A stretch of 64,000 nt of DNA, from contig OZ059896.1 of NCBI GenBank assembly GCA_964057225.1, positions 10,416,001 to 10,480,000 of the forward strand. The letters run 5' to 3'. Shown piece after piece: positions 14,471 through 20,160 of the stretch. A program made the position numbers and the translations under genes. The notes beneath the pieces are model-generated. The model did no database searches. It saw only the letters and a program-made list of their open reading frames with translations, and had not been told where the DNA came from. Origin of the DNA: Auanema rhodensis. Taxonomy: Eukaryota; Animalia; Nematoda. Each line of letters opens with the position of its first letter. Position 1 is the first letter of the stretch.

Positions 14471-16402
14471 ATGAAAACAGAAGAAACTTCTACTTCTTTT
14501 ACCTTCGTGCTATATCTTATTGTGTCTCCATTGGTTATTTCACCATTTTTAAACTCATTGTTGATACCAAACATTAACGAGGATACTGTATATGGTACTG
14601 TAAAGCCAAAATTTAACAATGTTTATGAAACATTCAGGTATTCGATTTTAACAATTATATTTAACTTTTAATATTTTCAGACGTAACTTCGGCGAAGGAC
14701 TTGAACGTGAAGGTGCTGCTATTTCGGTATATCACCGAGGAGAACTGGTTGTTAATCTATGGGGAGGGTATGCAGACAAAGAATCCAATCGTAAATGGAA
14801 AGCTGATACTCGTACTGTACTATTCTCAGCAACAAAGGTAAATTATAAAAAAAATTAAGAAAATAAAATCTAATTATAAACAAAAATCGAGAAATATTTG
14901 CTTCTATTTCGATCTTTAATGTATGTTATCAAAAAGATTAGCTACTTTTTTTTCTATTATATCGAAAATGATAACGGAAATAAAGATAAAGTTCAAACTG
15001 TTCCAGGCAATATCAGCATTATGTGTAGCCATTCTAGTGGATAGAGGATATTTAACATATGATGATAAAGTCACCGACTATTGGCCAGAATACGGTAAAC
15101 ATGGAAAAGAAAATACTACCATTGAACATGTGCTCAGTCATATGGTATGTGATTTCAATTTTATATTTTTCTTGCTCTAAACAAGATCACCATTTTCCAT
15201 GTTATGTTTTTAAATTGTTTATTTGAGGCTGGAGTTCCATACCTAGATGAACTTATTGAACCAGAAGATGTACTCAATTTTACTAGAATGTTTAGAAAAA
15301 TAGAAGATACCAAGCCTATATGGGTACCTGGTATGTATTCGTCAGTATATAATGAAATCTAGTTATATGATTCAGGCACAAAAACAGGCTATCATCCAGT
15401 AACGTTTGGATTAATTATTGACGCTATTATTCGTCGTGCTGATCCAAAAGGAAGAGATCTTTCGACGTTTTTTAAAGAAGAAGTTGGAAACAAATATGGT
15501 ACCTTGAAAGTAAAGTTCGCTAAACAACAAAAACGTTAATTATAGATTTACCAATTGATATCGGAATTGAGAAACACGAGGCTCCTTTTATTGCACGAAT
15601 TACTACACCAGGTATCTGGGAGTACATCAGAGATTGTATTCGAGATCCAAAAATCGTTGTTATGCTTGGAATAATCTATGCCCGATTGGACGAGATTGTC
15701 TTGAAAATTAGAGAAAATCCATCTTGGTTAGCTATAGATTGGGTAAGACCATGCTTACTCTCATTCCAAATTAATTGAAAAATTCTTAAAATTTTAATTA
15801 AATTGAATCTGAAGAAATTCATTTTAAACTTTGATTTTTGATTAATATCTTAACTTCAAAATGCGCAGCTACATGTGTTATGACTTGTTTTTAGGATACA
15901 ATTACCTTGAACGATCCTGATGTTCTCTCATTACCATTGGGTGCTGTTACTGGTGTTTCTGGAGCTGAACCACTTGCTCGACTATTTGCGATGTCTATTA
16001 ACGGACAAATAATTTCTAATAGAACATTAGATTTACTTATGCAGCCAACAATAAGTGATTGGCATAAAGAAGAGGTTTAATTGAACTATAATATATTTTG
16101 ATAATTCTCTGAGTTTCAGGTGACGTTGTGGCCTGTAATGAAAGGACGAGGATTCTTCTATGAGCGTAATCCTTTAGTGCCTGTTAGTTTAAAAATAACA
16201 TTATACCCATGATATGAAATTTTGTTTTAAGGGAGCATTTACATTTGGACATCCTGGATTCGGAGGACAGTTTGTTCACGTAGATCCATCTAATGACATA
16301 GTCATTGCATATGTAGCCAATGGCTTAAAAACAGCTTCAGGAGAATTATGTACACCATATATGCGTTTAATGAGCCAAGTTTACAAAGCAATTTCTGAAT
16401 AA
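14471..16402 (+). CDS. Beta-lactamase/PBP-fold serine hydrolase (nematode lact family) with N-terminal hydrophobic anchor
   Basis: [23 protein letters not shown], catalytic SxxK (FSATK), [34 protein letters not shown]; stop at 16400-16402. Confidence 0.93.
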
Positions 16403-17636
16403 TTTTTTTGAAAATTTGATTATGTCAAATCAAATATTTTCTTTTCTTTTAATAATACTACGGGTAATTATTGTATAATACATATGATATCAATAATTTC
16501 ATGTTCATGTCTTTGTTTATCAATTGAAAATGCAAAATAAAAATATAAATATACATAAACACCTGTACTTATGATTTCTATTTAAACATATTTTATAGTA
16601 AGTTTTGTAAATATTTAAACGACATTCAACTCACGATAAGAAGTTAATAAATTAAGCTGAGATGATTTAGTAAACGTGTTACAGTTCTGTTTTATGTTTA
16701 ATTCAGGGATAGGTTTAGTTGGATTCTGATAGTAGTTACTACCCATATGATTATAGAGCATAGAGAATGTGATTTATACAAATAGTTTATAAAGCTTTTG
16801 GATTATAATATTATATTTTATATAATTTCTTTTATTCCGCTAAACTTACATCATTTTCATCTTAATAGGATATGAATGATGAGAAAGCATTCAACAACAA
16901 TATTTAAAAAAATATTGTTTTCATTGATTTTTTCAATTTCATTTTCATTTTACATATTATATTCAATGTTATTTTCTTAAATAAGAAATATTATCGATAT
17001 ATGTTGTTATCATTTCAAAAAATTATCAACAGAGAGAACGATTTCATGCTTAGAAATTCAAAATTTAATAAATTATTTCTTTTTGTTGCAAATAGTTGTT
17101 TTTCAAGTTATAGTATAAATTAAAGTTTTCGTGATGATGAATCAGAGTTGTCTGCAATTTAGAAGATAGGAGAGTCAAGTTCTTTACAAGTAAATATTCT
17201 TTCTAATTATTTTTTTGTTTTGTTTTCGTTATGCGGGTGACCTCTATATACTCAATATATTACATCATCAGAAGCCTCGTTTCCAACGACAACGGCTGTT
17301 GTGATGCTGAAAATCGAAATTTCATATGTGTAGTGAGAAAGAAATGTATAGACAAATGTGGCTCACTTGCAAACTCAATTGAAATAACTATGCTTCACAA
17401 AACAAAATGTAAAACTGTTTGTTGAGCTGTTGAGCGTATACATTATTCTGAATCGGTAATACAATCACATATTGGTCTTCTTTAACTTATATTGTTTATA
17501 TTAAAGTTTAAAGTTAACCATATAATATGTACATATTTGTTATTTCATGTTAAAACTTTATATTCAAAAATCAGAAAATAATATTTATTTCCTGAAAAAA
17601 ACTTCACAGACAATTTTGTTTTAACATTTCCATTTA

Positions 17637-17845
17637 TTATTCTTCTCCAGTTGGTGCTGGACCAACAACTGTATCGTCATAATCCAAATCTGGACGACCA
17701 GGATGTTTTTTCTCTATTGGCTAAAAATGGATATTAAACAGATTAGATGAAAATTAATAAAGCTTACAATTTCTTCAGGTGGTACACTGTCAATGTTGAA
17801 GTTGGAATAATCAGGAGTTTCTTGAGATTCTGGAGCATCAGCCAT
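17637..17845 (-). CDS. 53-aa acidic, Pro-rich microprotein (2 exons), probable ciliary gene
   Basis: Acceptor tttcag just upstream of the ATG. Exon 1 17845-17768, 47-nt gtaagc...ttttag intron, exon 2 17720-17637. Product MADAPESQETPDYSNFNIDSVPPEEIPIEKKHPGRPDLDYDDTVVGPAPTGEE, followed by a double stop. The region is a GC-richer island in very AT-rich flanks. Confidence 0.82.
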
Positions 17846-17972
17846 ATTAAAACTGAAATGAGATGAAAACGTAAGAAAACGTTTGTGGTGCAAGGTGAAA
17901 GGATTGAAATTAAAAAAAATTGAAAATAAGTCTATGGCAAAGTCTTTTTATACGTTCAAGGATAATTGAAAT

Positions 17973-18015
17973 ATCTCCATGACAACTTTTGTATTGTAAA
18001 TGTTTCCATAGTAAC
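17973..18015. promoter_or_regulatory. Two X-boxes (RFX/DAF-19 sites)
   Basis: ATCTCCATGACAAC (17973-17986) and GTTTCCATAGTAAC (18002-18015) fit the 14-bp RTHNYY-WT-RRNRAC consensus, 130-170 bp upstream of the ATG at 17845. Confidence 0.8.
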
Positions 18016-18487
18016 ATGATGAAAATTTTGATGAAGTTATGAGTATAACATCTGATTTTTATCTATAATCATTAGTTATAATAGATTTAAATGAATAAGT
18101 TGAGAAATAAAACTATAAATTTCATTCTAATAATTATTTTATTTTTTTTAGTTCATGTGATTTATATACACATGTATATGATTATGAGCATATTATACTT
18201 AAATAATAAAATTATAGATTATAATTATAATTTTATGAATAATACTTAAACAATAGATACAATACATGAAGATTAGTAACATATATACATTAATAGAAAT
18301 ATAAATCTTTGGACCTTTTTTTTTAAATTTATTAAACAATAATTATATACAAATTAATGATTTTTGACTTTTTCATACCCATCATCATTTAAGATCTAAT
18401 ATCAGTATGATCATTGAATATTTTAAAATAACTTTATATATATATATATTTAAAATAATTTAAAAAATAAATCTTATATTAATATTT

Positions 18488-20160
18488 CTACCATTTTGAA
18501 TATATAATATTATTATAATTCTCAACTCCTTTTTCTCCTTTTGATGTTAATCCAATTAGATTTGCACAATGAACTTGACTTTTTCGCCTTCTTCGTGTAA
18601 GCATATATATAGTTAAAAAGGGCAAAACAAAAAAAAATACTGGTAAAATCTGAAAGAAATCAAAGAAAAAAAAGTTTTGTTTTCATTAAAAAAATTATAA
18701 TAAAACTTACAAAAACACTAGATTTAAGTGTATGATACAATGGAACATTAGTTTTAAACATATTTTGCATTAATCGTAATGTTAAAGTTGAAACAGCAAA
18801 AATAGTTATAATAGAAATCTTAAAAATAATATTAAAAGGTAATTTATATATTATTATAATATTACTTGAAGTAACATAATAACTGTTATGAAACGTGTCG
18901 TATCTAAATTTTCTTTAATTTGAAAATGCCTGGAAAGTTGAAATCGAGAGCTGTATAAATGAAAAAATTAATGAAAGTAAAAAGAATTTATGTTTTACCA
19001 GCTTTTTCTTCTTCTATTAATAACTGCAATATATTGTAGAGATAGTAAACAAAGTATTGCACATATAGTTAATATAAGAAAAGATAAATTTATTCTAATA
19101 ATAATAAAAATGAAATATATATGAGAAAAATAACTAAAAAACCGATTAGTTGAAGCTCTAGGTGTTGTTATAACAGAGATTTGTGGTTCTTCAAATGTTT
19201 CATCCCAATAACATAATGTAATTAAAGGAGCAGGTATCACAACCTAAATATATTATAATATTTTTTATTTATTATATAACTATATATGGTTATATATACT
19301 GTACTGTGCAATAAACTTCGGACACCTACTAGATACTCTTGTATCTTTTCAGACAAACTACAAAAATAAAAAAATAAAAAGGTTTTTTTGGTTTGAGCAG
19401 GAGTTTCTGATGCCTCTAAGAGGCGAGTGTCCGACGTTCATTGAACTAAACTAACTGTATGTAGTATATAATATATAAATTGAATTTTTGAACTTCATCC
19501 TTACAGATAAAAATGTTAAAAGAAATCCTATTTTTGAATTTCTTTGTTCATATGTTTGTGAATGAATTGTAGCAATTGTTCGTTCGACACAAGCAGCCAT
19601 TTGTAATGAAAACTGAGAAACAAAAAATAATAAAAATAAAAGAAACAAATAGAAAATAAACCTGAACAAGTAAAGCATAAATGTTTAAAATATGTCCAAT
19701 AATATAAAGATTTCTACTTAAAAATATATCACAAACATGTATCATATCACTTACAAGTATATTTTGATATGCCTAAATAATAATAATATTTTATAAAAAT
19801 TAAAAAAACTAATTTATATACTAAAAATATAGTTAATATAAGTGCATGAAATGTAGCATTAGAAAAATATGCAATTAATATAATCTAAAATAATAATATA
19901 ATTTTATTTATTTATATATTAATTATATAAAATACTTTTATATTACAATGAAATGTTGTTGGATAAATAAATTGATGTTGAACATATATTAATGGTATTA
20001 TAGATAATAAACTTAAAATACATCCCAATAATTTCAAATGTATATTAAGAGGAAATGAAACTATTTGATAACCGTTCTTAAATTATAATTATTTTTGTGT
20101 TTTTTTTCTAAAAGAAAACAAATTTACTTGAAAACAAAACTCATCCGTTAATGTTTCCAT
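18488..20160 (-). CDS. Serpentine chemoreceptor GPCR, Sra superfamily (Srb-like)
   Basis: METLTDEFCFQ, TTFHCN, ACVERTIATIHSQTYEQ, FQLSRHFQIKENLDTTRF; multiple TM exons; ends YNNIIYSKW with TAG at 18488-18490. Confidence 0.85.
19297..19459. mobile_element. Degenerate MITE-like element (Tc1/mariner-type ends) in a chemoreceptor intron
   Basis: Inverted repeats caataaacttcggacac (19309-19325) and gtgtccgacgttcattg (19427-19443) match at 15/17. The right end actgta fits a TA-CAGT terminus. The intron is about 250 nt versus about 45 nt typically. Confidence 0.55.

Follow-up and report, generated by a model that had tools for sequence, protein, structure and literature searches.

In the canonical targets of the RFX transcription factor DAF-19, such as bbs-5, osm-6, xbx-1 and the B9 genes, the ATG is preceded at about 100-200 bp by an X-box that fits GTHNYYATRRNAAC. 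Their products are folded components of IFT, the BBSome or the transition zone and are conserved throughout the ciliated eukaryotes. The family of the Caenorhabditis elegans gene C33A12.4 differs from these targets in that its named members come from nematodes only and have neither a predicted fold nor a known partner.

Kunitomo et al. (2005) ranked C33A12.4 second among the mRNAs enriched in ciliated neurons, and expression was found in the amphid, phasmid and labial ciliated neurons (PMC551537). The supplement of the same paper lists C33A12.4 among the genes with X-boxes (PMC551537). Chen et al. (2006) placed it in the top 50 daf-19-dependent genes (PMC1794439). In arrays comparing daf-19(+) with daf-19(-) animals, its signals were 1106 versus 25 and 1064 versus 50, a difference of approximately 29-fold (PMC1794439 supplement). 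In its daf-19 dependence it ranks between osm-6 and xbx-1, with an absolute signal above either of them; the array signal of osm-6, for example, was 248 versus 1106 for C33A12.4 (PMC1794439). A later paper uses C33A12.4 solely as a ciliated-neuron marker, and the published mentions of the gene that we found are all list entries or marker use and give no function. Another C. elegans gene ranked at the top of the screen in which C33A12.4 was found, R102.2, encodes a protein of 125 aa whose listed relative is R102.1.

In this study, we describe a gene of Auanema rhodensis located in a 64-kb stretch of genomic DNA, called the window hereafter. As judged by sequence comparison, it is almost certainly the single-copy orthologue of C33A12.4. 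It is therefore an orthologue of an already known, uncharacterised gene and not a new kind of gene.

Structure of the Microprotein Gene

A preliminary description of the window had proposed a small two-exon ORF with X-boxes upstream. The ORF was found as placed: the gene is a minus-strand ORF of 53 codons (26 + 27) followed by TAA, in which two coding exons are separated by a 47-nt GT-AG intron. The locus is compact, in that two X-boxes, a TATA-like element, a candidate SL1 acceptor, two exons and an AATAAA sequence lie within approximately 380 bp. The features of the locus and its neighbours are as follows (positions in the window).

18488-19678 and beyond, minus strand: Srab-class serpentine chemoreceptor gene (Pfam), the last open piece of which ends at 18488
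18002..18015, no strand assigned: distal X-box GTTTCCATAGTAAC, a perfect fit to GTHNYYATRRNAAC on both strands, near-palindromic, starting 170 bp upstream of the ATG
17973..17986, no strand assigned: proximal X-box ATCTCCATGACAAC (minus strand GTTGTCATGGAGAT), one mismatch, starting 141 bp upstream of the ATG
17946..17952, minus strand: TATAAAA, a putative TATA-like element approximately 20 bp downstream of the proximal X-box and approximately 100 bp upstream of the ATG
17853..17858, minus strand: TTTCAG, 7 nt upstream of the ATG
17845..17768, minus strand: coding exon 1, 26 codons from the ATG at 17845 (family profile E 1.8e-6)
17767..17721, minus strand: intron of 47 nt, phase 0, GT-AG (GTAAGC...TTTTTAG), 21% G+C
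17720..17637, minus strand: coding exon 2, 27 codons and TAA (family profile E 2.8e-13)
17633..17638, minus strand: AATAAA, overlapping the stop codon, a putative polyadenylation signal
14923-16402, plus strand: beta-lactamase-domain (PF00144) gene, downstream of the microprotein gene and convergent with it

Exon 1 includes TPDYSNFNIDSVPPEEI and contains a first conserved motif, PDYS.F..DSVPPEE; exon 2 encodes PIEKKHPGRPDLDYDDTVVGPAPTGEE and contains a second one, HPGRPDLDYDDT.VGPAP. The exons have a G+C content of 40-42%, the intron one of 21% and the flanks one of 15-27%. Both exons are single-copy in the genome (181 Mb, 112 contigs).

The TTTCAG sequence just upstream of the ATG is probably an SL1 trans-splice acceptor, because the genome carries approximately 3450 copies of the SL1 22-mer. 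Tandem arrays of these copies, with periods of approximately 252 and 341 bp, include C3:6741531-6766485 and C3:14134320 onward (L002, L003). Compared with the hundred or so SL1 genes of C. elegans, the copy number in A. rhodensis looks far higher.

Homologues and Conservation of the Gene

Is this short ORF a gene at all? Short ORFs are common, this one was perhaps picked after the X-box had been seen, and neither exon has a Pfam match, all of which would suit a chance ORF beside chance X-box matches. We therefore turn to its homologues, which were sought with single exons of the window or with proteins retrieved from the databases. A search with the 59-aa unspliced ORF that holds exon 1 gave no homologous protein. 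The query that we used against 1.84 billion representative proteins consisted of exon 1 with four intron-coded residues (window:17756-17845:-), and the first homologue obtained, P0002 (E 2.2e-4), has an exon-1-like stretch joined in frame to the exon-2-like EVKHVHPGRPDLDYDDRPVGPAPEE. P0002 (120 aa) is internally duplicated and probably arose as an assembly artefact; searching for contigs that encode it, we found no such record. A repetitive protein of 750 aa (P0001) was set aside as noise. With the clean part of P0002, and then with an alignment search, 40 proteins of 32-90 aa were recovered, the family profile search being restricted to proteins of 31-98 aa. The homologue search proposed in the preliminary description thus reveals a conserved gene.

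The named members of the family belong to Caenorhabditis, Pristionchus, Heterorhabditis, many strongylids, Aphelenchus, Ditylenchus, Meloidogyne and Halicephalobus, that is, to nematodes of clades V and IV; further members are unnamed Logan and JGI products. C. elegans is represented by NP_501685.1 ('Uncharacterized protein CELE_C33A12.4', 61 aa, UniProt Q18358, P0021). C33A12.4 had been suggested beforehand as a possible relative, and its place in the same family is borne out by its presence in this set. R102.2 had been suggested as well; at 125 aa it falls outside the 31-98 aa range of the profile search, and none of our results hints at a relationship with it.

To the 2756 stop-to-stop pieces of the window, excluding those touching 19894-19942, we applied a profile built from 26 orthologues alone, from which the window sequence had been left out. 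The piece containing exon 2 matched profile positions 28-51 (E 2.8e-13) and that containing exon 1 matched positions 1-25 (E 1.8e-6), so that the order of the exons agrees with the profile and the two together cover it from end to end. No other piece among the 2756 scored, the next best having an E value of 2.9. In the family alignment (A2), the two exons of the window coincide exactly with the two halves of the family, and conservation is concentrated in two short blocks; almost no variation is seen at R, P, D, L, D, Y or at V, G, P, A. The N-terminal family motif PDYSK[FY].EDSVPPPE[KR] is present in exon 1 of the window, and the C-terminal motif H.HPGRPDLDYD[DE]TPVGPA in exon 2.

The intron position is conserved as well. 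All ten orthologous loci, like the window, have a phase-0 intron immediately behind the SVPxxE[KR] block, and the same exon boundary is seen in the unspliced read-through products P0042, P0037, P0035, P0040, P0034 and P0033. The gap of 77 nt in the C. elegans cDNA clone yk305a7 equals the intron length at the locus (L005). Both exons match an independent profile in order while nothing else in the window scores, the intron position is shared, and the G+C content of the exons is approximately twice that of the intron. The family profile, the alignment A2 and the conserved intron position effectively refute the view that the ORF arose by chance, and we regard its probability as negligible.

The window gene shares with C. 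elegans C33A12.4 its two coding exons, the position and phase of the intron and both motifs, with 19 of 27 residues identical in exon 2 and 10 of 26 in exon 1. Both proteins are small and acidic and have no Pfam domain. They differ in that the C. elegans protein, at 61 aa, extends into a TECTEEKND tail at its C-terminus and the window protein stops soon after GPAP; the intron is 77 nt in C. elegans and 47 nt in the window, and the neighbouring genes are different. By sequence, the closest members are those of H. placei (P0003), A. caninum (P0009), H. bacteriophora (P0013) and C. bovis (P0024), each with approximately 60% identity over both exons, although none of these species is a near relative of that of the window. 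The strongylid members also end shortly past GPAP (..GPAPEE), as the window protein does, but their introns are far longer, reaching 1.1 kb in A. caninum.

Several members bear implausible automatic names in the databases: 'Candidate secreted effector', 'Multidrug transporter', 'Translation initiation factor' and 'TFIP11' occur among P0032, P0013, P0007 and P0021. The first of these, attached to the Meloidogyne incognita member P0032, would imply a secreted product. However, no member has a hydrophobic N-terminus and all begin with an acidic stretch; the family is present in free-living species, and the C. elegans gene is neuronal (PMC551537). The other automatic names are equally implausible for proteins of this size. 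We rejected the secreted-effector reading on the basis of the acidic N-termini, the free-living members and the neuronal expression in C. elegans, and consider secretion extremely improbable.

Genomic Setting

Directly upstream of the microprotein gene on the same strand lies the Srab-class chemoreceptor gene, as the preliminary description had stated for a chemoreceptor in general: its exon at 19454-19678 matches 7TM_GPCR_Srab with an E value of 1.1e-5, above the Pfam cut-off. Given this shared strand, the last open piece of the receptor ending at 18488, and a TTTCAG acceptor just upstream of the ATG, the two exons might be imagined as part of a larger unit, either an operon with the chemoreceptor or a longer protein. 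Against this, approximately 640 bp separate the end of the receptor from the ATG, and this interval contains the X-boxes and the TATA-like element. The orthologues are free-standing genes of 55-76 aa with other neighbours, the two exons span the family profile end to end, and the AATAAA sequence overlaps the stop codon. The operon was rejected because of the gap with its promoter elements and the free-standing orthologues, and we regard a larger unit of either kind as very unlikely.

Some further features of these loci may be recorded here. Between the microprotein gene and the beta-lactamase-domain gene, a plus-strand ORF of 64 aa with eight cysteines lies at 17231-17425, in a stretch that by eye is richer in G+C than its AT-rich surroundings. 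It has no Pfam and no Rfam match, and the stretch might represent a small gene or exon, on one strand or the other. An Rfam search of 16400-19800 returned nothing relevant. In the clade IV species A. avenae, D. destructor and Halicephalobus (L007, L008 and L012), the orthologue is followed by a convergent mitochondrial-carrier gene, a case of conserved microsynteny; this neighbour is absent at the window locus and in C. elegans.

X-boxes and the Promoter

The preliminary description had also noted two X-boxes upstream of the ORF and a weaker third one at about 17928. The first two hold, one as a perfect site at 18002-18015 and the other with one mismatch at 17973-17986; the two are 15 bp apart. 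The supposed third site, AAGTCTATGGCAAA at 17928-17941, has four mismatches on either strand and was rejected, so that it is not counted here. The distal site GTTTCCATAGTAAC is the sole perfect GTHNYYATRRNAAC site in the 64-kb window, and shuffled sequences gave a mean of 0.63 strand-matches. The motif is uncommon in the genome, the 181 Mb of which contain 832 strand-matches in all.

Conservation of the X-boxes upstream of the homologues, which had been proposed as a check, is evident. A site with at most one mismatch occurs between -250 and -50 of the true ATG in eight of the ten orthologous loci; with a chance of 0.031 per locus, as estimated from the remaining sequence of these loci, the binomial P is 4e-11. 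The reversed pattern, used as a control, occurs in none of the ten. When a variant with a 3-nt spacer is admitted, Halicephalobus becomes the ninth locus, with sites at -178 and -98, and C. elegans gains a second site at -155. The X-box-like sites of C. elegans thus lie at -124 and -155, compared with -141 and -170 in the window. Paired X-box-like sites are found upstream of the C. elegans, C. bovis and Halicephalobus orthologues, and the pairing seen in the window therefore recurs in the family. In P. pacificus, no X-box was found within approximately 1.2 kb upstream of the annotated start, so the link between the family and the X-box is not universal.

Other genes of A. rhodensis carry the same motif. 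Perfect X-boxes were found 97 bp upstream of a BBS5 Pfam match and 287 bp upstream of a match to the B9 domain; the RFX regulon of this genome therefore uses a GTHNYYATRRNAAC-type motif.

With regard to the remainder of the promoter, elements of the TATAAAAG type, read directly, also follow the X-box in the promoters of N. brasiliensis, A. caninum and D. destructor, and the TATAAAA sequence of the window may play the corresponding part. A GGGCGG-like element occurs approximately 20-40 bp downstream of the X-box position in L005, L013, L011 and L006, the promoters of C. elegans, C. briggsae, C. bovis and P. pacificus, where it reads gggcgtggc, gggcggggc, gggcggcgc and gggcggagc, respectively. 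It is absent from the AT-rich promoter of the window.

Indirect Evidence of Transcription in Auanema rhodensis

No protein with the words of exon 1 was found in a collection of 5.8 billion proteins; thus, no public annotation or transcript-derived product of A. rhodensis was seen. Four sequencing runs of one 2019 study, the material of which we guess to be RNA, hold 0.46-0.50 of 28 words sampled from 17580-17900. For an mRNA that is both spliced and trans-spliced and that terminates 15-35 nt past the AATAAA, the expected share of these words is 0.44-0.51; genomic DNA would contain all of them. With the runs guessed to be RNA, the observed share is a hint of a spliced transcript. Splicing and expression in A. 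rhodensis are therefore suggested by conservation and by this indirect word share; expression and daf-19 dependence have been demonstrated for the C. elegans gene only.

The runs that hold these words are small (13-20 million letters), which implies a high abundance. This abundance might be taken to mean that the gene, although a genuine C33A12.4 orthologue, is not driven by its X-boxes in A. rhodensis or is expressed more widely than in ciliated neurons, and P. pacificus, with no recognisable X-box near the annotated start, would agree with such a possibility. However, the C. elegans gene, which is strictly daf-19-dependent, is also abundant (1106 versus 248 for osm-6; PMC1794439). Moreover, the X-boxes are kept in position in eight or nine of ten orthologues from two nematode clades, and the motif marks the BBS5 and B9 genes in this same genome. 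We thus consider X-box-independent or broader expression unlikely.

The association of the ORF with ciliated neurons, X-boxes and DAF-19, which the preliminary description had proposed, turns out to be published for the C. elegans orthologue (PMC551537; PMC1794439). The microprotein gene of A. rhodensis is very likely an RFX target in ciliated neurons.

Properties of the Microprotein

The window protein of 53 aa is acidic. Pfam gave no match for either exon or for eight orthologues, and the PDB gave no relative for the exons, the orthologues or the family profile, the only match being one to PCNA at chance level (E 0.3-0.6). A feature search of the ESM Atlas returned no match above 0.80. AlphaFold2, run on a 28-row family alignment modelled on the C. 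elegans member, produced no secondary structure (pTM 0.22). The microprotein is therefore predicted to be disordered and without a fold, in agreement with the acidic, disordered and domain-free protein that had been proposed at the outset. It had also been proposed that HPGRPDLDYD may be a short binding motif. This sequence is the most conserved block of the family, and the protein has no predicted fold, both of which fit the idea; it may thus be a site of binding.

Proposed Role of the Gene

How might such a gene act? We propose that in A. rhodensis the orthologue of DAF-19, an RFX factor, would bind the paired X-boxes upstream of the microprotein gene and that this binding would drive strong transcription in ciliated sensory neurons. 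The microprotein would then be a disordered adaptor or regulator, and its partners, one or two folded proteins in the cilium or the dendritic ending, would be bound through two nearly invariant linear motifs, PDYSK[FY].EDSVPPPE[KR] and H.HPGRPDLDYD[DE]TPVGPA.

Taken as a whole, a C33A12.4 orthologue that is RFX-driven through paired X-boxes and encodes a disordered adaptor or regulator is the best explanation of the locus, and we hold it with high confidence. As to the part concerning the protein itself, that a motif-bearing disordered adaptor or regulator docks onto folded ciliary partners is a suggestion to which we would give somewhat less than an even chance. More tentatively still, we speculate that the C33A12.4 family as a whole, named so far in nematodes only, may be an abundant RFX-driven microprotein with a specific job in sensory cilia, whose two invariant motifs might act on a conserved ciliary machine (IFT, the tubulin code or the transition zone), for instance by clamping or regulating it.

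As a single result, the window adds one more orthologue to a known gene family. It also provides an example of a real gene of 53 codons, below the ORF cut-off, that can be recognised from sequence alone. If the microprotein is indeed RFX-driven and ciliary, a double-X-box promoter of approximately 200 bp might conceivably serve as a portable ciliated-neuron driver in non-model and parasitic nematodes, although we regard this outcome as doubtful at present; its very compact size could also make the promoter useful for the labelling or manipulation of ciliated sensory neurons in further nematodes, including parasitic ones. C. elegans C33A12.4 is among the most daf-19-dependent and most abundant transcripts of ciliated neurons, yet it has no assigned function. 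What the comparison adds is that two nearly invariant motifs, an intron position and X-boxes are conserved across clades IV and V, which provides a handle for experiments on this family.
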